From Paramoeba atlantica (lineage: Eukaryota > Protista > Discosea), in the NCBI GenBank assembly GCA_977017575.1, contig CDRNVI010000149.1, forward strand, positions 124,001-188,000: a stretch of DNA of 64,000 bases, written 5' to 3'. This document shows positions 9,001 through 54,030 of this stretch, in pieces. The translations under genes were made by a program, and so were the position numbers. The notes beneath the pieces are model-generated. The model did no database searches. It was not told the DNA's origin and worked only from the letters and a program-made list of their open reading frames with translations. Each line of letters starts with the position of its first letter. Position 1 is the stretch's first letter.

Positions 9001-11690
9001 CTATTTGACTTATTTACAAAAAAAAAAACATATTTCCCTTTGTTTTTGATTATTTCCCAATCACTTTTTCAATGTCTATTTGTATTATTTTCATTTTTAG
9101 AAAATTGTTATTCAATTTTTGATATTTAAAAGTTCATTTTCAGACAAGTTACAAATAAAATTGTATTTTTTACACAATTTTACAATCTATTTGATTTATT
9201 TACAAAAAAAAAAACATATTTCCCTTTGTTTTTGATTATTTTCCAATCACTTTTTTCAATGTATAAATCAATATTTGTATTATTTTCATTTTTTCTCAAT
9301 TATTATTTAGTTTTTGATGTTTAAAATTTAGTTACCAGACAAGTTACAAATAAAATTGTATTTTTTACACAATTTTACAATCTATTTGACTTATTTACAA
9401 AAAAAAAAACATATTTCCCTTTGTTTTTGATTATTTCCCAATCACTTTTTCAATGTCTATTTGTATTATTTTCATTTTTAGAAAATTGTTATTCAATTTT
9501 TGATATTTAAAAGTTCATTTTCAGACAAGTTACAAATAAAATTGTATTTTTTACACAATTTTACAATCTATTTGATTTATTTACAAAAAAAAAAACATAT
9601 TTCCCTTTGTTTTTGATTATTTTCCAATCACTTTTTTCAATGTATAAATCAATATTTGTATTATTTTCATTTTTTCTCAATTATTATTTAGTTTTTGATG
9701 TTTAAAATTTAGTTACCAGACAAGTTACAAATAAAATTGTATTTTTTACACAATTTTACAATCTATTTGACTTATTTACAAAAAAAAAAACATATTTCCC
9801 TTTGTTTTTGATTATTTCCCAATCACTTTTTCAATGTCTATTTGTATTATTTTCATTTTTAGAAAATTGTTATTCAATTTTTGATATTTAAAAGTTCATT
9901 TTCAGACAAGTTACAAATAAAATTGTATTTTTTACACAATTTTACAATCTATTTGATTTATTTACAAAAAAAAAAACATATTTCCCTTTGTTTTTGATTA
10001 TTTTCCAATCACTTTTTTCAATGTATAAATCAATATTTGTATTATTTTCATTTTTTCTCAATTATTATTTAGTTTTTGATGTTTAAAATTTAGTTACCAG
10101 ACAAGTTACAAATAAAATTGTATTTTTTACACAATTTTACAATCTATTTGACTTATTTACAAAAAAAAAAACATATTTCCCTTTGTTTTTGATTATTTCC
10201 CAATCACTTTTTCAATGTCTATTTGTATTATTTTCATTTTTAGAAAATTGTTATTCAATTTTTGATATTTAAAAGTTCATTTTCAGACAAGTTACAAATA
10301 AAATTGTATTTTTTACACAATTTTACAATCTATTTGATTTATTTACAAAAAAAAAAACATATTTCCCTTTGTTTTTGATTATTTTCCAATCACTTTTTTC
10401 AATGTATAAATCAATATTTGTATTATTTTCATTTTTTCTCAATTATTATTTAGTTTTTGATGTTTAAAATTTAGTTACCAGACAAGTTACAAATAAAATT
10501 GTATTTTTTACACAATTTTACAATCTATTTGACTTATTTACAAAAAAAAAAACATATTTCCCTTTGTTTTTGATTATTTCCCAATCACTTTTTCAATGTC
10601 TATTTGTATTATTTTCATTTTTAGAAAATTGTTATTCAATTTTTGATATTTAAAAGTTCATTTTCAGACAAGTTACAAATAAAATTGTATTTTTTACACA
10701 ATTTTACAATCTATTTGATTTATTTACAAAAAAAAAAACATATTTCCCTTTGTTTTTGATTATTTTCCAATCACTTTTTTCAATGTATAAATCAATATTT
10801 GTATTATTTTCATTTTTTCTCAATTATTATTTAGTTTTTGATGTTTAAAATTTAGTTACCAGACAAGTTACAAATAAAATTGTATTTTTTACACAATTTT
10901 ACAATCTATTTGACTTATTTACAAAAAAAAAAACATATTTCCCTTTGTTTTTGATTATTTCCCAATCACTTTTTCAATGTCTATTTGTATTATTTTCATT
11001 TTTAGAAAATTGTTATTCAATTTTTGATATTTAAAAGTTCATTTTCAGACAAGTTACAAATAAAATTGTATTTTTTACACAATTTTACAATCTATTTGAT
11101 TTATTTACAAAAAAAAAAACATATTTCCCTTTGTTTTTGATTATTTTCCAATCACTTTTTTCAATGTATAAATCAATATTTGTATTATTTTCATTTTTTC
11201 TCAATTATTATTTAGTTTTTGATGTTTAAAATTTAGTTACCAGACAAGTTACAAATAAAATTGTATTTTTTACACAATTTTACAATCTATTTGACTTATT
11301 TACAAAAAAAAAAACATATTTCCCTTTGTTTTTGATTATTTCCCAATCACTTTTTCAATGTCTATTTGTATTATTTTCATTTTTAGAAAATTGTTATTCA
11401 ATTTTTGATATTTAAAAGTTCATTTTCAGACAAGTTACAAATAAAATTGTATTTTTTACACAATTTTACAATCTATTTGATTTATTTACAAAAAAAAAAA
11501 CATATTTCCCTTTGTTTTTGATTATTTTCCAATCACTTTTTTCAATGTATAAATCAATATTTGTATTATTTTCATTTTTTCTCAATTATTATTTAGTTTT
11601 TGATGTTTAAAATTTAGTTACCAGACAAGTTACAAATAAAATTGTATTTTTTACACAATTTTACAATCTATTAAATCTATTTACAAAAAA
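1..11690. repeat. AT-rich tandem satellite, 381-bp higher-order dimer (A 195 bp + B 186 bp), ~30.6 copies
   Basis: CAAGTTACAAATAAAATTG starts at 1, 196, 382, 577 ... 11626 (=196+30x381). A and B share the first ~110 bp and differ in the last ~75-85 bp. The array begins before the window. Confidence 0.98.
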
Positions 11691-12739: not shown

Positions 12740-13830
12740 ATGGTAATGTTGTTGTACTTTATAAAGCCTCAAATGCTGGAAGAGTATGGAACATTTGTCT
12801 TGACAAGTATTTCAAATTGATTGGTTATATTTCTTCTCCAAACAAACCTGCTCTATATACCATCACACCAATGGATCAATTATTGCTCTCTGGGTCACAA
12901 TGACATCTTTATTACTGGTCCTAACAACAACCACACCACAAAGACTCTTGCATAGCTTCACAAAGAATTCCAAGTTAAAACTTTCAAGCAAGTTTCTTAC
13001 ACATTCAGTATCTCCTTCCAAATCTGCAAAGATGGATTCTACTTCCTCTCCCAAACTGCTATAATTAAAAACCTCTTGAACTCTCTTGGTTTGCCAACAC
13101 ACCAGGAACACAGAATACCCACACTTCCTTTGGATATCAACCTCATAAAGAACATTGTACTAGAAATACTACTGAACTTGAGGATATGAAGAACATCCCT
13201 TATCAATCCACCATTATTGGCAAACACTTTTATACATTTTGCAATGGCCACACATCCCAATATTCTCTACTCTGTGATCTCTCTCTCTCAATACACCTCA
13301 AACCCAAGGAAGTCTCACTGGAAACACCTGAAACAAGTGGTCAAATATTTGAAGGGAACAAAATGGATGGGATTGCTCTACAAACTGAAAACATCTGACA
13401 TCACTCTCAATGTTCACTCAGAGGCCTCCTACAACTTGGATCTCAACACTGGAAAATCATCCCTTGGCTATTGTATGAAACTGAACATGATTGTTGCTGG
13501 GCATATATGGCATTCCTCTCTCTCCAAAACCGTTCCCAAAGAGCACTCAACATACTGAGATTATATTGCTGGATCAAAATGTTTGGATAGCACCAGAGAT
13601 GATGGGCCTCATTCCTTCTTGAACACACTGATGACAACTACACTTGACCCATTCCCTTTCACACACAGACAATGAAGCACAAATAACAAATCCCCAGACT
13701 ACAAAAGGAAGCTGACATATCCTTCCCCACCACTACTTTGATCTCCACTATGCACATGATACAAAGGTCATTTCTTTTGAATCTACTTCTTACTAACAAA
13801 CTGTGCACACATCCTGACCAAAGCATTAAA
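12740..13830 (+). mobile_element. Degenerate Ty1/copia RT-RNase H remnant
   Basis: Frameshifted peptides LYKASNAGRVWNICLDKYF (LYGLKQ..R.W), WV..NDIFITG (YVDD), ATHPNILYSVISLSQYTSNPRKSHWKHLKQVVKYLKGT, HSEASYNLDLNTGKSSLGY (YSDADWAGD...RKSTSGY), HILTKAL (ADILTKAL). Confidence 0.88.
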
Positions 13831-14059
13831 TGGACAACCCTTTCTGAAAACATAGAAGTTCACTCTCAGTCTCAGATCTGCCCATTTAGCCTGCATACTC
13901 AATATCCTCTCTCTCTCTCTCTTCCTCACATATTCAACTATTCTCATTCCTGGAGGTTTTTTGCACTGTGCTCACATTCCAGTTTTCTCTCATCCAAGGG
14001 CTTTCCATGTTTTGTGGTTTTTCCCTTGTCCTTTTACTTTACAACTTCTACAATATGAT

Positions 14060-15735
14060 TCTCAATTCTCTACATACAACATCCATTTTGAAACCCATTG
14101 CACAACATAACTCAAATCAAACCAAACCCATATGAGGCTGGAGGGAATACTTCTACCCAAGGCCACCTGTTGATTTGAAGTGCATAGAGGCATTGTCCCA
14201 GCTCTCTCAAGAGTATTCAAATTCGAAAAAAAAACCCACAGACCACACAATATTTTGAGACTAAATTGCACAAGAATCATGAAATACAATGTCAAAGTAA
14301 TCCACAAGCCAGGAAGACAAATAGCAATTCCTCTGATGCGCTCAGCTGACACAAAATATCACATATGATACAAAGAAAACCAGAGCAGTTAACAGAGACA
14401 TTCACTTTTGCTGCCAAATACAAGATATTCTTGACAAACAAAATGATCTTATGGCAAAAACCGACCAAAAAAAGAGGAACAAGACAAGAGCATCCCAGAT
14501 GTTCAAATGTTTAACACCCTCTTAAAATCAATTCACACACTTGAGGGGGAGACCAATTCCCAAATCAGTTGAATTACCAAGCCTTTTGCTCAAGCATAGT
14601 AAGATGATATTCCTTCTGCACTAAAATAATCGACTATCATCTGTGTGGAATTCTTCCTCTAAAGAAACAATCAAAAAATGCTTCAAACAAAAACCCACAA
14701 ATTCTGGATAGACCTAGCAGGAATCCTCAGAAAAGTGGCTGAAATGTAACCCTAAAGAGAAAGAGGGTTGCCTCCAGCAGTCCTACCTCAATCACTTTTG
14801 GGGTGAAATACTAAATGGTGGTCACAGAAAGTTTGAGAAGCGCTTTGGATCAAGCAGTCTCTGACTCATCATTCTGTTTTTCCTAAATCATATACCCATA
14901 CATTTACTCCTTTTGCCAAAACTGTTTGGAATGTCAAGACAACAACAAAAAAAACAAAAAAAGGAATGAGAGGAGCAAGACTCAAACCTCTTCTTTACTC
15001 CATATCCTCCTGGGCCACTGCCTGCACCCCCTGGACCAAAATACCATCTACAAGGATTCACTTTTGCCTGTAATTGTGACAATTTCGATGGATCCATCCA
15101 AATCTACCCAATCTCCCAGCCACAGAAATGCAAAAACAATTGCAGAAATTGCTTTATGCAATACACACCTGCATCAACTCTATGCCTATCAAAATTATAA
15201 CCCTGACAATGGCTTTGAATTCTCAAACCAGCTTCATGGCTGATTTGGCAAATCAAGGTCATTTAAGCATATATATATATCCATCCATGATCATTGAAGA
15301 TGATTGGGATCTCCTAATTCCTCTTCACTTCATTCTTCATTCACTTTGGTAGACATCCATCAATGGTATTGGATACAACAGAGGCATATTGACGAGAAAT
15401 AGCAGTCACCACTTCTGCTGATCATTTCAATCTAGAACAACAGAACATGTGCCACAAAAATATTATGCACCTAAAGGAATTAAAAGTAAAGATATATGAG
15501 ATCTCTGTTAATTATGAAGAAGGACAAATACAAAACCAACCCCTCCTGCATGTGTCCTTGAATTGAATAAGATGGATGATTTTAACCACAGAGATGATTA
15601 CAATTACAAAGTGAAAGAGATTCATGAACACCACATTGATGAGGATGGAACACTTTAATAGAAGGACTACTGTGTTGGAAAAGCTATCAGACACCATCTC
15701 TGCTCCTGATTTAATCAAACATTATTGCAAGAATC
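14060..15735 (+). mobile_element. Degenerate Ty3/gypsy (chromovirus-like) RNase H-integrase-chromodomain remnant
   Basis: TDHT..., KYNVKVIHKPGRQIAIP/DALS (RNase H end), GGH..EK and CLECQ (HHCC), NAKTIAEI...DNGFEFSNQL (integrase core), DWDLLIPL, then YKVKEIHEHHIDEDGTL...ISAPDLIKHY (chromodomain-like, ~15599-15730). Many stops and frameshifts. Confidence 0.82.
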
Positions 15736-46450: not shown

Positions 46451-47322
46451 ACTCATTCTCTTTCCTTCTCCCAAAACTCCACACAAAACCAGCGCCCTTC
46501 CAAAAAAAGTGGTGCGCAAAGTCAAAAAGACCCTTACTACTGGCCCAGGCTACCTCTTTTTTCTTTTTTCTTCTTTTCTTCTTTTTTCTTCTTTTTTCTT
46601 CTTTTTCTTTTCTTTTTCTTTTCTTTTTTTCTTTCTTTTTTTCTTTCTTTTTTTTAAAACCTGATTATATTGAACTACCTTCTTGTCGATTGACTCTTTC
46701 AAAAGTTTTTCTCTTTTCTTTTTCTCTTTTCTTTCTCTTTTCTTTCTTTCTTTCTTTTTCTTTTTCTTTCTTTCTTTCTCTTCTTTCCTTTTTCTTTTTT
46801 TTCTTTTCTTTTTCTTTTTTTTTTTCTTTTTTTTTTTCTTTTTTCTTTTTCTTTTTTCTTTTTTTTAAACCGGTGTGTGTGTCAAACTACTTCTCATCAA
46901 TCTTTCTCTCTTTTCTATTTCTCTTTTCTTTTTAAAACTTAGTTTGGGTCTTTATCAATTTGCTCTTTCAGAAGTTTTTCTTTCTTCTTTTTTTTCTTTT
47001 CTTTTTCTTTTTCTTTTTCTTTTTCTTTTTTTCTTTTTTCTTTCTTTTCGTTTCTTCCTTTTTTCTTTTCTTTTCTTCTTTTTTTCTTTTCGTTCTTTTT
47101 CGTTCTTTTTCGTTCTTTTTCGTTCTTTTTCATTCTTTTTTCTTCTTTTTCCACCACAGCCGATTTTTGAGAAAACGCGAATTTTAAAAATAAAGTTCGG
47201 GCCCATTTTTTTGGTAGCAATCCGGTGTTTAAAGGTGTCATAAGCAACTTTTTGATGGTTGTTAAGGTGGTAATTTTTTTTTTTTTTTCAGATATTGGAT
47301 TCACAAACCCAGCACCCATAAT

Positions 47323-48358
47323 TCAAAATCCATTTTCATTTTTCAAAGACATATGATAATATGTCGCTGCTCGAATACCAGCAACAGAGCCAGGACTGTG
47401 TTTCCAAATGTAACCCAACTCGGTAAGTCCAAAACTAGGTGTATTTTCCCATCCAAATCCTAAATAAAAGAGAAGAGAAAGCCCAATGTCTTTTTTGTCA
47501 CAATGAAGAACTGTCCCATGAGCAATTGAGAGCCAGAATTCTTCAATCAAGCGGAAAATCTTTGTTGAAAGAGTCATTTGCTGTCCGGTTGCATCAAACT
47601 TTTTGTGAATGTCTTCAATGCATTCTCTCTGTTTATCAAATATTGGTGGGGGTGGGGAAGATGAAGATGTCTCTTTGATTGTTGAAGAAACCCATTTTTC
47701 GAAACGTAACTCAAAGATCGCATATCCTCCGAAAAAGAGATTCCACAAATGGAACAATCATATCATTTGTTTGGCCTGCTTGAACATATTCCCGAATCGG
47801 ATTTGCTTGCTTTGCATGAATTCCCATCGTTAACAAACACCATCCTCGACAATTTCTCTTTGTTTGATTAAATATAAAACATTGGAGGATTGAGAGCTCA
47901 TATACCTCCTCAGGAGATCCAACCGATTCCAACCAAAACATATCCTTCAAACCACTCTCCGATTTAAAATAAACATTTCCGGTCAATTCCTTCAATAAAT
48001 TCTCATCTTTCAAAAGGTCTTGTTGGGTATTACAACCACCTGGATTCGCCAATTTTTGATAAAAATCTTCAGTGGCACCAGGAAAATGGGCCTTCCAGCT
48101 CGAATCTGAGAGGCGATCTAATGGGATCCTGTTCACATCATCAAAGAGAATTGTTGTTGTTTGAGAATTTTGTTTTGGAACTTCAAAAGATTTAAAAAGA
48201 ACTGGAACTGGCTCTGCTGGTTTGATTTCAAAATAAGTTCTCATCAACGACAGTGCTTTTTCCCTGGTTTCCTTGTCAGAATAATGTGGTCGTCCTGGTT
48301 TTGAATAATCCATCGGTTTTGAGAGTCCATGTGAACCACTTGCTTTCTTTCGACTCAT
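47323..48358 (-). CDS. Unknown ~345-aa protein split by one frameshift (~47740)
   Basis: Two overlapping complex ORFs (47711-48358 and 47323-47757) with normal composition; no motif recognised. Confidence 0.55.
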
Positions 48359-49159
48359 TCTTCCAACAATTTCAGAAACCTGGATATTGTGTGTGGAGTG
48401 GATTCAAAAAAAGATATTTATAAAAAATGAGAATAATAATAATAAAAAAAAGAGGAAGGAAAAAAAAGAGGAAGGAGAAAAAAGGAGAAAAAAAAAGAGA
48501 AAAAAAAGGAAGAAAAAAAAGGGAGAAAAAAGGGAGAAAAAAGAAAGAAAAAAAAAGAAAGAAAAAAAGAAAAGAAAAAAAAAGGGAGAAAAAAGAAAGA
48601 AAAAAAAAGAAAGAAAAAAAGAAAAGCGAGATGATCGAACGGAAACACAACCTTCTTTTCAAGCACTTCCCAAGACACTAAGCTCTTATTTGTTTTTACA
48701 AGTTCTCTTACAGTCCAAAAACGAAAACGATCAAATAATAAAGGTGAAGGAGGAGAGTAGAAACTATCCTCATATGATGGCTCTGAAAGACGAACAGGAG
48801 GTAACAATAATGTCGAGAGAGGAAAAGGGTTTTTTGGCGATAATGTCCATGAAGAAGAAGAGAAAGAATCATGGGTAATTGATTGACAGAGCAAAACATC
48901 CATTTCTAATCTCCTTCTTTTCTTTCTTTCTGATCGAATTTGTTTTTTTCTTTTGAGATTGAATTTGGTGAGCATTTTGAAAAAAAGAATCAAAAATTTG
49001 AAAGAAAGGAAAGAAAGTAGCAATTTTCGTATTGGATTCTTTTCAGATTACTTTTTTTCTTTTTTTTTATTAGAAAAATACAGCCAAAACGATTTTGTTC
49101 AAGCACTTTGTTTTTTTTTTGTTTTTTTTTTGCTTTTTGTTTTTTGTTTTTTGTTTTTT

Positions 49160-49854
49160 GTTTTTCTCAAATGTCTGAACAAACTGCTCACTCTGTTCAA
49201 ACCTGAACTCCTTCTCGAAAACTCCTTGAGGCAGATGAATCTTTCTTTAAAAGAGGAAACTCTGTTCCATATTGCTACATCTCTCTTGAACCCTCATCAC
49301 ATCAAAGCGTAAACAAACCAAAAACTACAAACCAAAAGAAAAACCAAAAAGAAAAGTGTCCTCCTTGTGCTCTTTCTCTTTTGGAGAGCAATATTGCAAG
49401 CAAGTTTTCATGTGATACAATTGTTGATTCTGTTGTTATTGAGCTTGATCGGATTGCCCATGATCTTTTTTCAAAAATTCCCTCGACTGCTTGTAGTATG
49501 CGAATCTATCGAACAAAGGTCAATGCAGTTCTGTTTGAACTCCTCATCATCCCTCATCTTTTGAGAAGTGGTGGCGACCTTTCTCCTCGCAAGAAGTCAG
49601 CGCCAGTTTTTCTGATCCAATTTTACGAAACAAAAACTTTTGAACAAATTTTTTCAGGACTTGCATCAAAGGGACTCTTCAACCCAATGACGAAAAAATT
49701 CAAAAATGGTCAAAAGATGTGGATTGTCGCTCATAAAAAGTATCCGGTTGTATGGAGATTTTCTGCAAATCTTGGAACTCTTGCAGTTCATTTTTTTGTT
49801 CAAGGATGGACAAAAGGAGGACTTCCAATCAATGATCTTTATATCTCAAATTAA
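49160..49854 (+). CDS. Unknown spliced gene (at least 2 exons) convergent with the Transib-like transposase
   Basis: Open complex frames ~49160-49310 and ~49381-49854 separated by a short GTAAAC...AG intron-like segment; start uncertain. Confidence 0.5.
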
Positions 49855-52830
49855 TAAATTTATTATTTCTTAAGATTGTGATTGATTGAAAACGTAATCT
49901 TCGTGGTTTTGCTTTCGTTTTTTCCTCTTCTTCCTCTTCTTCCTCCTCCTCTTCTTCTCCCTCTTCTTTGTCATCAAAAGAAAATTCATCCTCTTCCTTT
50001 TCTTCTTCCTCTTCCTCTTCCTCCAACGAGAATTCATCTACCTCCTCATCCTCAAAGATCTCCTGTTCTAACTCCTCCATAGACTCTCCTGTCTCTCCCT
50101 CAGGTGGAACTACATAATTCTTTAAAATGAGTTCCCTTGTTGTTTGTGGAACTCTTTTTTCACAAAAATCGATCATCTTCTTTTCAATCGCTTGACAACT
50201 TGGACATACTTTGTTTTCTTCCCCAACATCTTCCACAACACAAAACACAACATTTTCCCTTCTCAACAAAACGATACACGATCCTTGATATTGTGCCCCC
50301 GAACAGATAGTTTCACTGGACAAAGGAGGTGAGCCAAAAATCGAAAATCGTCATATTTTGTGGCTGTCTCATACTTCATTGCGCCATAGCCACATTTTTT
50401 CACAAGTCGCTTTTGAATTAAATTTCGTAACTCTCCGCTTTGGCAACTACTGACAGCTGGTCCAACTCCTATTTGAAAAAGAATGAATGAAAGGAGATAA
50501 TCAATAAAAAAAAAAAAGCAGAGGGGGGGAAAGAAAAGAAAGGAAAGCAAACCATAATTTTCATAGACTTTTTTGTAAAAATAAGGGCAGTCAAAACAAA
50601 GAGTATAAAACCATGTGATAATATTCGAGCTTGGAAATATTAATTTCATAATCTGAATAATTTGCTTTCCTGTTCTCGTCATTTCATCTAAAAGGTGTTG
50701 AACCTCACTTGGTTCCAAATCTTCCCCCTCATTATCAGTGAATTTCAAACATTCCCAAAAAGAGCTCATAAATTTAATTCGCTGACAAATAAACGAACGA
50801 AAAAGCTTGTAACTTCAAATCGAACAAGGGTGGCAACCGGTGGTGAGGAAAACAGGAATAAATCGCTTCAACAACCAACTTGTGATAATTTTGCAATAGC
50901 CTTGTTGCTTGCTCTCCAATCAACCGAAATTTCAGCTTCTTTCCTTCCTCAGTCTCAAGAATGTACTTCCATTCAATCGTCTTTGCAAAAGAGAGCAATC
51001 CAGAAACTCTTTTCATTCGCTCCACCATCTCTTGTAACATCTTTCTCCCAAATTCCTTATTGGAATTTGCAAACTCAACAATAGTAAGAAATAAGGCCAA
51101 AGTTGCAGAGCACTTGCCACTTGCCATGAAGAGGACCATCTGGAGTAAAACGCTCACAAATCGCTAACAAAGGGGCTTCTTTTTGGCTATAATTCTCTTT
51201 CCGAATAAATTGTTGAAGGATCGCATCTCTTGCATTTTCATCTATCGACTTATCTGAAACGATTTCTTGCCATTTCACTCGAACTTTTTCCCCCATTTCT
51301 TTCATTTTTGCCAATGTTCGCCTTCGTAACTTGTCTCGAGGAATGTCAGCATTGTCACGAGTCACATCAAGCCAATAAACAGAGAAATAAGTTGCAGAAC
51401 AACCTTGATGACCAGCCACTTTACTTTGGTAAGAAATGTCAGATCGACTGGATCTCAGGAGAGACGGACAAAACAAAAGCAAAGCCAAACCAAAGATCAA
51501 ATCGAAAATGTAGATTTATTCAAGGAAACAAACAAGGTGAACATTTGCTCAAGAGAGAGAAATGTGAGGGCAGTGAAAAGACAGTTGAGATGTGATCGTG
51601 ACAAGAATAAAAAGGAACACAAAAACAGCGTTTTTGTGGAAGGAAACAAGGACAAAATCAAATCAGGAAGGGATAAAATAAACATCAGGAAAAATAGGAA
51701 AAGGGAAAATAATACAAGGGGAAAAATACAACAGAGAAAGGGAAAAGAGAGAGAGAAAGAGCAGTGATCAATCGGAGGAGCGGAGCGACAGGATGGCATC
51801 AAATTGAATAGAAGACAACCGAACAGGGTTCGTAACAAGAAAGGCCACCAATTGGAAGAAAATGGCAATGGTACAGATTTGTTTTGGTATTATCGATTTC
51901 ACATGGAATTGAAACACCATTCTTTTCCACCACTGCAATTCCAGGGTTTAAAACATTCTCACAAAGCCATTTGCTCACTTCATCATCTTCTTTGAAATTC
52001 CCACCACAGATCCAAGGCATCAATGTTGGTGAACTTCCAACTCCAACAAAGTTCACAAATTGCAAATATGTATTTGTCATACCCATCTGAAAAATAGATT
52101 TTCAATTAAATCTTGTTTTGTTTCTTTTCCTCTATGCTCCCCCTCAAAAAAAAAGAAAATAATTTTTCTACTTACTTGTTTACTCTCCGGGGCACCATCA
52201 GTGAACATATTCACTAAAATTTGATATTTGCCTTCTTAAAAAAGGTGAGAGATTGTTGAACTTTCGAACATTGGAGCATTGCTTTCAGTCTTTTCTCAAC
52301 AACTTCTTCCAACTTTCGATAACCACCTTTAACCCCATACTCAGAAGGGAGTTCATGAAACCTATATGTTTATCTTTTGAGCAAATTGTTTTCATTGAGG
52401 AGGAGAAAAGAAGCTTATTACAAAAAAAAAAAAATTCTTACTTTGCTTCAAGCTCCAATGCGGACAACATTTTCTCCCCAAAATCCATCGCAGGCTTTGG
52501 AGCAGGAAGTTTTGGAAATGGAATTTCAAACTCTGGTGTTTTCAACTGAATTAGTTAGCTCCCCAGACAAAGGATCTAAGCCTCACTGAAATATTGATCG
52601 CATAATTTGGATTTTTTGGTAACCCATGTCATTCATCATCATGTTCACAAACTGTGCTTGTTTCAAATTGTCAGATTTCTCGAGGTTTTGAAAGTCTATT
52701 TATTAAATTTTGAAGAAATCAGAATCCTTCAAAAACACACACAAAAAAAAAAAATTAACCTTTTTGAACAGCTTTCTTCACAACTTGCTTCCCAACGGGC
52801 AGACAAATGACTTCTTCAATCAGTCTTTTT
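49829..52830 (-). mobile_element. Decayed, intron-containing Transib/Chapaev/RAG1-like DDE transposase with acidic C-terminal tail
   Basis: VNMFTDGA (D at 52197-52199), SDISYQSKVAGHQGCSATYF (D at 51438-51440), PLLAICERFTPDGPLH, KFRLIGEQATRLL, ITWFYTLCFDCP, YG|VGPAVSSCQSGELRN (E at 50431-50433). Introns at 52087-52175 and ~50472-50551. 5' extent uncertain. Confidence 0.75.
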
Positions 52831-52849
52831 TGAAACCTTGGATTACAAA

Positions 52850-54030
52850 ATCCATCACCTCACTATATGTGGTTCGAGCAAGGGGGCGCATTTCTTCAAG
52901 CTTTTGATAAGTCACTTGGGTTTCCAATGTATCATCATCCAACCAACATTTCAACTTCTTTTTCAACTTGTGTGGCAGAGTAACAAGTTGAGAGTGTACA
53001 GAGTTTTCGATTTTTCGATTGAAAGACATTTGCAAGAAAAGGAACCTGTCACATGGAACCTGTCACATTTAGAAAAAAAAAAAGAAAAAAAAAAAGAAAA
53101 AAAGAAGAAAATAAACCTTCTCATTTTCTTTCAGACCATCAACTTCACCATAAAGAGTTTGACAATCACCATGTCGGGTGATTCAGCTACAAAGGTCATT
53201 TTTAAAGAACATCGAGGGTCTGCTCTGGTTGCAAGAGAAAAGACTGTGCTTCCCTTGTTTTGCCAACCCTTCCGTCGCCCGGACACTCCCAAAATAGGAA
53301 TCAGCAACAACAAGAGCTCCTTCAGGAAGTTGATTCGACATACAAAGAAGGGTTTCATGCATTGGTTCGGACACCCCATCTCAATGATACTGAGAGAAAG
53401 CAACAAAATAGCCAGAAAAATCAACAAGAGACCAATTTTTAATGCCATGTGGATGAGGCTTCCTCATTATGAACACATGATGAGGATTCTTTCTTCCTTT
53501 GTGAGGAACAAGGGTTTCATCCACAACACCTGTATTTGCTGGGATCCAGATCGCACCCATAATTTTAGTGACAAAAGAACCACCCTCACTCTCAAATGTT
53601 TCTTCTGGTTGTTTATCTCTGCCAACCTTTTCTTCTCTGTTCCCAATTTTCAATAAATAAAAACTGGAATCAAAAGAAAACAAAATGACCTGACTCGGTT
53701 GATGATGTTCGGAAGTTTTTGGAGATAATCAGGGGGGAGGGCTGTCTTGATCACACCTTCCACCATTTTGTATTTTTCTTGAAGGTCAATGTGCAGACAA
53801 CCAGGCTTAATTGTTGGTGTGTGGAGCTCTTTCTTCTGTGATGTGATCTTGAGCTGAATTTGTTCTTGTTCTGTTTCTTCTTCTTTCTCCTTTCTTGTTT
53901 TTTCTCTCCTTTCTTTTGCTTTTGGGTCATTTTTTCTTTTCTCTCTTTCTTCTTCCACCCCCTCTTTTGTACATGAGACAATTGTGTGCCCAGATTTTAA
54001 ACAAAAAGTGCAAACCATTCCCTGAAACAA
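52850..54030 (-). mobile_element. Decayed piggyBac-family transposase with an upstream zinc-knuckle exon
   Basis: GVVDETLVPHKGRKNPHHVFIMRKPHPHGIKNWSLVD, LVVADSYFGSV, RKLCTLSTC, RPLARTTYSEVMDF; upstream CTFCLKSGHTIVSC; in-frame TGA at 53381 and 53183. Confidence 0.85.

Follow-up and report, generated by a model that had tools for sequence, protein, structure and literature searches.

Does a 64,000-nucleotide stretch of the Paramoeba atlantica genome (GenBank assembly GCA_977017575.1, contig CDRNVI010000149.1, positions 124,001 to 188,000 of the forward strand; hereafter the window, numbered from its first letter) carry a RAG-related transposon? An initial annotation had noticed RAG1-like motifs, tail-to-tail with a second gene, and had read the pair as a two-gene element with a ProtoRAG-like layout. 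Comparison with related loci indicates that window 47152-52842 (minus strand) is very probably a dead, 5′-truncated copy of a 6.04-kb cut-and-paste DNA transposon, and that this transposon belongs to an unnamed branch of the CMCT clade (EnSpm, Mirage, Chapaev, Transib and allies), being neither a Transib nor a ProtoRAG. The unit has three genes instead of two, the additional one being TET/JBP-like.

The element and its copy in the window

A word search with the exon that holds GHQG through DGPLH returned seven open reading frame (ORF) fragments, 79-96% identical and all from a single European Nucleotide Archive assembly. The contigs of these fragments, together with three more reached via the protein cluster of the second (partner) gene, gave ten related loci for comparison (L001-L010), of which L007 is a JGI metagenome contig carrying a distant relative. 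Blastn extends the repeat unit to window 47152, its 3′ (right) end, whereas the match to most copies ends at 52842 because the window copy is truncated at that point. Full copies are present in L002 (6311-12356), L008 (7966-14011) and L010 (8171-14209), each 6.04 kb long and 96-97% identical to one another. The limits of the window copy are:

47152-52842, minus strand: decayed, truncated element copy of 5.69 kb including a 406-bp secondary insertion (blastn against L001-L010, alignment to L010)
47152-47181, no strand assigned: right terminal inverted repeat (TIR), reading CACCACAGCCGATTTTTGAG.. on the plus strand where the ancestral form is CACCGCATYCGATTTTT; on the minus strand the element ends ..GTG (from a pattern scan that covered the window and the loci)

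Full copies on the other contigs have the termini 5′-CACCGCAT..GTG-3′, and the ancestral form is 5′-CACCGCATYCGATTTTT.. and ..GTG-3′, with TIRs of roughly 17-30 bp (in L010 the left and right ends match at 17/17 positions and then at about 25/30). Variants beginning CACCACA, CACTGCA or CACTATA among the copies are products of CpG decay of CACCGCA. The element therefore does have TIRs, which had escaped the initial annotation; the right one is retained from 47152 onward, and it is the only one in the window because the left 749 bp, including the left TIR, were deleted. The insertions in L002 and L008 lie at unrelated sites, each flanked by AGT/AGT with differing 5-bp flanks, and L002 holds two empty paralogues of the L008 site, which the filled site exceeds in length by exactly 3 nt. 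The target site duplication (TSD) is thus 3 bp; the sequences at L002 and L008 exclude one of 5 bp. Of the two features proposed as a check on the ends of other copies, CAC-initiated TIRs were found and 5-bp TSDs were not. We saw no clean TSD in L010, L009 or a 2.4-kb derivative in L002 (1093-3504). This derivative has both TIRs and consists of 1.1 kb from the left end, a 1-kb internal segment in inverted orientation and 0.4 kb from the right end; it looks like a rearranged non-autonomous copy. No subterminal repeat arrays were seen, and k-mers scanned over the terminal 450 bp at each end of L010 revealed no repeated motif. Both ends of the element show the heptamer-like CACCGCA followed after ~10 nt by an A-rich run, and we considered reading them as resembling recombination signal sequences (RSSs); the resemblance, lacking 12/23 asymmetry, was judged too weak. 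Neither blastn nor tblastn found a second element copy in the window.

Aligned to L010, which has suffered the least damage, the window copy shows 98.0% identity. At the paralogous locus L009, whose flanks agree with those of the window copy on both sides, the left end is retained together with 213 bp of flank missing from the window, so the window copy has undergone a deletion. Its remaining damage includes a CGA-to-TGA stop in transposase exon 2 and the following:

near 52554, 52225, 51119, 50797, 50270, 50245 and 49885, minus strand: seven frameshifting insertions in the transposase, of 4, 2, 7, 4, 1, 1 and 4 bp (alignment to L010)
51437-51842, minus strand: secondary insertion of a small mobile element, 406 bp, with a roughly 10-bp target duplication, interrupting exon 4

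The 406-bp insertion falls exactly between LPIG and D.SYQSK; it is missing from L002-L006, L008 and L010, and is present at another position in L009. Copies of it occur in L009 at 11265-11674 (98% identity) and 13769-14111 (84%). It is a small non-autonomous mobile element to which no class is assigned.

Frameshifts or stops occur in every element copy seen. In the window, L001, L002, L005, L006 and L008, 11-51% of C/G sites within CpG are changed to T/A as against 1.4-10% of other C/G sites, so that CpG sites are altered 8-13 times more often, and CGA-to-TGA changes account for most premature stops. Such CpG loss is a signature of cytosine-methylation-driven decay and fits a methylated genome. 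The copy structure also bears on the notion that the host has domesticated the two genes, so that the locus derives from a transposon but is no longer mobile. The genes do have introns, one of them at a position common to distant relatives, but the element exists in at least ten copies, 90-98% identical, for which TIRs, TSDs and an empty-site paralogue are seen; this, the lesions in all copies seen and the truncation in the window speak for mobility. We consider domestication extremely improbable, and at the window locus the copy structure refutes it.

The transposase and its likeness to RAG1 and Transib

The transposase comprises ~845 codons in five exons (summed exon lengths). Its remains in the window are:

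49870-52842, minus strand: transposase pseudogene; exon-1 remnant 52842-52760, exon 2 52695-52442, exon 3 52361-52176, exon 4 52086-50553, exon 5 50468-49870, with the ancestral stop at 49872-49870
52191-52205, minus strand: FTDGA, candidate first catalytic Asp (D134 of the relative P0012), conserved as F.D.APESK in P0012 and P0013
51384-51443, minus strand: (G)D.SYQSKVAGHQG.., candidate second catalytic Asp, reading SDISYQSKVAGHQGCSATYF (P0012 D220, approximately RAG1 D708), conserved in P0011-P0014
51140-51126, minus strand: DGPLH motif (P0012 D320/H324)
50926-50894, minus strand: RLIGEQATRLL motif
50422-50448, minus strand: SCQSGELRN, candidate catalytic Glu (P0012 E510, equal to RAG1 E962 by aligned range), conserved as SC.xGE in P0012, P0018, P0023, P0024 and L007

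Between 52.4 and 49.8 kb the minus strand holds a series of ORF pieces whose frame shifts repeatedly. The five motifs are found in these pieces, at the places and in the order initially annotated, from FTDGA (52205-52191) to SCQSGELRN (50448-50422), and are followed by a Cys-rich segment (a CxxC..CxxC cluster around 50209-50192) and an acidic tail. In the window the second Asp motif is separated from LPIG by the 406-bp insertion. The family alignment conserves F.D.APESK, GD.SYQSK..GHQG, PD.PLHGK, RLIG and SC.xGE. The gene had been described as spliced, and it has four introns, but several further introns supposed at that stage are lesions relative to L010. To judge from the alignments, the four introns at 52759-52696, 52441-52362, 52175-52087 and 50552-50469 are the only real ones. 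The changes of frame that follow DGPLHGK, precede FTDGA or lie close to ICQRIKF and VSFVEKGKC are damage. The relatives P0012, P0013, P0018 and P0024 are colinear across the intron junctions, and the last intron occupies the same position in L007.

The family is small and stands apart from named families by sequence. A profile (A1) built from a tiled alignment of undamaged pieces, covering 296 columns of exon 4 and leaving out the C-terminal pieces, has only 17 matches among 1.84e9 representative proteins; these include the nearly full-length P0012 (657 aa) and a 369-aa ORF of L007. Pfam, with E allowed to rise to 5, returned nothing for the transposase pieces of the window, L002, L010, L007 or P0012, and neither phmmer nor a family-profile hmmsearch against PDB sequences gave a RAG1 or Transib match.

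The proposed RAG1/Transib relation finds its support in structure. An AlphaFold2 model of P0012, built on a shallow alignment (mean pLDDT, the predicted local confidence score, 56), is confident for residues about 265-530; the first Asp (D134) lies in a low-confidence part and is assigned by motif order only. The 26 top Foldseek matches to this model are all RAG1 or HzTransib. By VIA-align, 31 RAG1, BbRAGL and HzTransib entries score Z 13.2-9.0, with the next at 8.1. An unbiased search of 48,161 representative PDB chains, made independently of Foldseek, placed BbRAGL, HzTransib and RAG1 at ranks 1-6 (Z 12.7-9.3, next 8.6), the best single match being the BbRAGL of ProtoRAG (Z 12.7). The suggested comparison of an AlphaFold model with RAG1 and HzTransib thus put both ahead of all other chains. 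The matching region is the insertion domain (P0012 about 233-536), and sequence identity over the aligned structure is 9-19%. In the VIA ranges, P0012 233-507 corresponds to mouse RAG1 720-959 and 318-507 to 790-959, which puts E510 on E962, D320/H324 on D792/H795 and, by extrapolation, D220 on 707/708. The motif pairing with RAG1 in the initial annotation agrees with these ranges at D708 (extrapolated), D792/H795 and E962. The protein-language-model neighbours of the transposase are RAG1/Transib clusters; in an Atlas shape search, the model of the transposase met only clusters without a name, from cnidarians and arthropods. The structure comparisons support, for the transposase family, a predicted RAG1/Transib-type fold in the large helical insertion that separates the second Asp from the Glu.

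Counterparts of the RAG1/Transib zinc ligands C727/C730 and H937/H942 were not found in the family, which has YFSVYW or WSVFYC at the position of CxxC and one conserved Cys at that of H..H. To our knowledge, the PDB contains no EnSpm, Chapaev or Mirage structure, and RAG1/Transib would therefore be the top solved match for any CMCT member. These points bear on whether the element is a true Transib or ProtoRAG, in which RSS-like TIRs would enclose a RAG1-like transposase and a partner that resembles or replaces RAG2. The rank of BbRAGL, the language-model neighbours, the conserved tail-to-tail layout and the TIRs beginning with CAC would all suit such an element. The 3-bp TSD, the blank Pfam result for a RAG1 domain, the missing zinc ligands, the ready explanation of the fold ranking and a partner with a conserved part of ~140 aa, predicted as mixed alpha/beta and lacking any kelch or PHD match, all tell against it, and we regard it as highly improbable.

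Partner gene, cargo and surroundings

The partner gene had been taken for a spliced gene, but is a single ORF of 227 codons:

49171-49854, plus strand: partner gene, single exon, convergent with the transposase; a TGA at codon 12 (49204-49206), otherwise intact

The overlap of its 3′ end with the transposase reading frame (26 nt, 49829-49854) is present in the window copy, but not as an ancestral trait: the two stop codons are separated by a 15-nt spacer in L010 and L002, and the overlap arose because of the 4-bp insertion at about 49885. The partner is 93% identical to P0008, which belongs to a 90% cluster of 12 members in the assembly, and 54% identical, with 59 invariant columns, to P0009 on L007. 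There P0009 lies tail-to-tail with a transposase 43-49% identical to that of the element, so that the proposed co-occurrence of both genes holds in a distant relative. The partner ORF is open or nearly so in many decayed copies and, on these comparisons, the partner appears at least as conserved as the transposase.

We found no Pfam domain in the partner and, in agreement with the initial annotation, no kelch or PHD match. An Atlas feature search gave no usable language-model neighbour, and a word search with the partner and P0009 located relatives in only two clusters among 5.8e9 proteins. The AlphaFold model is poor (pLDDT 47) and predicts, at low confidence, a mixed alpha/beta protein. The conserved part of the partner is only about 140 aa, which makes a six-bladed kelch propeller impossible.

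What, then, is the partner? Its retention tail-to-tail beside a diverged transposase on L007 suggests a conserved accessory gene, to which no function is assigned. The alternative is a gene captured from the host, or an ORF that arose by chance, riding with the element family. Such transposons do pick up cargo genes, for example TET and SET, and the partner has no recognisable domain and few relatives. Its position and convergent orientation are, on the other hand, kept beside transposases as different as 43-49% identity, and it is itself conserved across that distance and open or nearly open in decayed copies; capture or chance is accordingly unlikely. The idea of a new accessory protein thus stays viable, favoured by the conserved layout, with the role itself a deduction from it. 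A stronger version would make the partner an accessory subunit of new structure that a RAG1-fold transposase cannot do without. Two-component RAG-like recombinases, in which a catalytic subunit is paired with an unrelated helper from a tail-to-tail gene, would then have arisen, independently or very early, outside animals and in a lineage devoid of the RAG1/Transib zinc site. We hold this version to be unlikely.

The third gene lies towards the right end:

47323-48358, minus strand: TET/JBP-like dioxygenase with the HxD motif LHCDKKD, broken by a 1-bp insertion near 47735; TGA at 47320-47322

In L010 (8118-9344, minus strand) it is a 408-codon ORF, the frame of which passes through the right TIR into flanking DNA before meeting any stop. 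An HxD motif (LHRDKKD or LHCDKKD) and a later His were seen by eye, and 58 of the 60 nearest named language-model clusters carry PF12851 Tet_JBP (score 0.96). Neither Pfam hmmscan nor phmmer against PDB gave a match, and we therefore call the gene TET/JBP-like and do not regard the identity as proven. Three genes follow the partner on L007 (2-3904): one of 292 aa to which no family is assigned, one that is cupin/JmjC-like (E 1.6e-4) and one with a SET domain (E 1.3e-5). Cargo thus differs between family members while transposase and partner stay together. In a genome methylated as the CpG decay suggests, a TET/JBP-like cargo would help the element.

The remainder of the window shows other repeats. 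Just outside the truncated end lies a piggyBac-type transposase fragment (53183-53683, minus strand; Pfam DDE_Tnp_1_7, E 6.8e-6), the sole nearby Pfam match. The intervals 31.4-39.8 kb and 55.3-63.7 kb carry the same ORF set, displaced by 23,917 bp, and agree in base composition; they represent a large direct duplication. The 44-55 kb region seems to have paralogues, 96-98% identical, in L001 and L009. From position 1 to about 11,700 the window consists of a satellite with a period of 381 bp (186+195), 18% G+C and copies 100% identical.

Placement in the CMCT clade

Members of the CMCT clade have 5′-CA..TG-3′ termini and TSDs of 2-5 bp, and the clade is defined by Kojima through a C(2)C/H(3-4)H motif (Kojima 2025, PMC12730594). 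The present family has CAC..GTG ends and a 3-bp TSD, in keeping with the terminal features. The closest parallel is with TET-carrying EnSpm families of rust fungi, which have CAC..GTG ends and 3-bp TSDs (PMC12730594); the ends, the TSD and, probably, the TET/JBP-type cargo beside an Asp-Asp-Glu (DDE) transposase are alike in the fungal TET/JBP-carrying EnSpm/CMCT elements and here. A likeness to RAG1 that is only remotely detectable is also common to both, through HHpred for the ESTA transposases (PMC12730594) and through fold search in our case. The present family differs in its host, which is not a fungus, in lacking the zinc motif and in having the conserved convergent partner, and its transposase has no Pfam family and only the 17 representatives given above.

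The predicted helical ZnC2/ZnH2-type insertion fold and the putatively colinear DDE residues (E510 on E962, D220 near D708) of the present family resemble those of Transib, ProtoRAG and RAG1; CAC at the element ends is a further likeness, and ProtoRAG shares the second gene tail-to-tail, an arrangement conserved on L007. The ProtoRAG-like layout holds to that extent, but Transib and ProtoRAG have a 5-bp TSD as against 3 bp, a heptamer/nonamer 12/23 asymmetry and zinc ligands that are missing here, and the ProtoRAG partner is a kelch/PHD RAG2-like protein whereas the present partner is neither kelch nor PHD; the TET-like gene is an addition. Since the 5-bp TSD, the zinc site and the kelch partner all failed, we file the family as an unnamed branch of, or beside, CMCT and not as Transib.

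Maize En/Spm (CACTA; TnpD and TnpA) likewise has CAC.. termini and a 3-bp TSD, but the present ends read CACCG instead of CACTA, and we found neither a Transposase_21 or other CACTA Pfam match nor subterminal repeat arrays. En/Spm needs a second element-encoded protein. A counterpart to this need in the present element is our inference from the partner, which is a separate convergent gene, unlike TnpA, an alternative splice product. The Kyakuja-Dileera-Zisupton (KDZ) elements of basidiomycetes also associate a DNA transposase with a TET/JBP dioxygenase. KDZ identity was considered for this link and rejected: no match supported it, all neighbours in the fold and language-model searches are of RAG1/Transib type, and the termini and TSD resemble those of EnSpm. 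The best fit is a family that works like EnSpm or Transib and belongs to a wider, already described transposon group, not to ProtoRAG.

Several points weigh against this placement. No sequence or profile method ties the transposase family to any named superfamily, and the C(2)C/H(3-4)H zinc motif of CMCT is not conserved in the family alignment. The fold match supporting the RAG1/Transib relation concerns the insertion domain and comes with no Pfam or PDB sequence profile and no zinc ligands; the Foldseek E-values are no better than 0.02-0.3, and helical domains easily reach Z 10-13 without homology. The RNase H core of P0012 (residues 113-260) has pLDDT below 50 and the sheet that holds the first two Asp is poorly modelled, so that the DDE assignment draws on motif order and extrapolated alignment ranges. 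A clean TSD is present in two of the five two-ended copies (four full-length and the 2.4-kb derivative). The TET/JBP identity of the third gene follows from language-model neighbours and an HxD seen by eye, and should be taken as a resemblance. The accessory role of the partner is inferred throughout, and is still the most economical reading.

In the proposed mechanism, the transposase would bind the CAC..GTG ends, excise the element by DDE catalysis and integrate it with a stagger of 3 bp, as in EnSpm/CACTA and Chapaev. The dioxygenase may oxidise 5-methylcytosine on the element, which would then resist methylation-based silencing, and the partner may act as an accessory factor that takes the place of TnpA or RAG2, for example a subunit for end binding or regulation. 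For the origins of RAG as such, the family adds no new ProtoRAG, and the window locus is itself a dead copy. The family does carry RAG1-fold (CMCT-clade) transposases with anti-silencing cargo (TET/JBP-like here, SET in the relative) beyond fungi to another eukaryotic lineage, and it would represent a branch that retains the RAG1-type insertion domain without its zinc ligands. Where ProtoRAG has RAG2L, this branch has a conserved helper gene of unassigned fold, which makes it testable whether RAG1-type enzymes generally need a partner.

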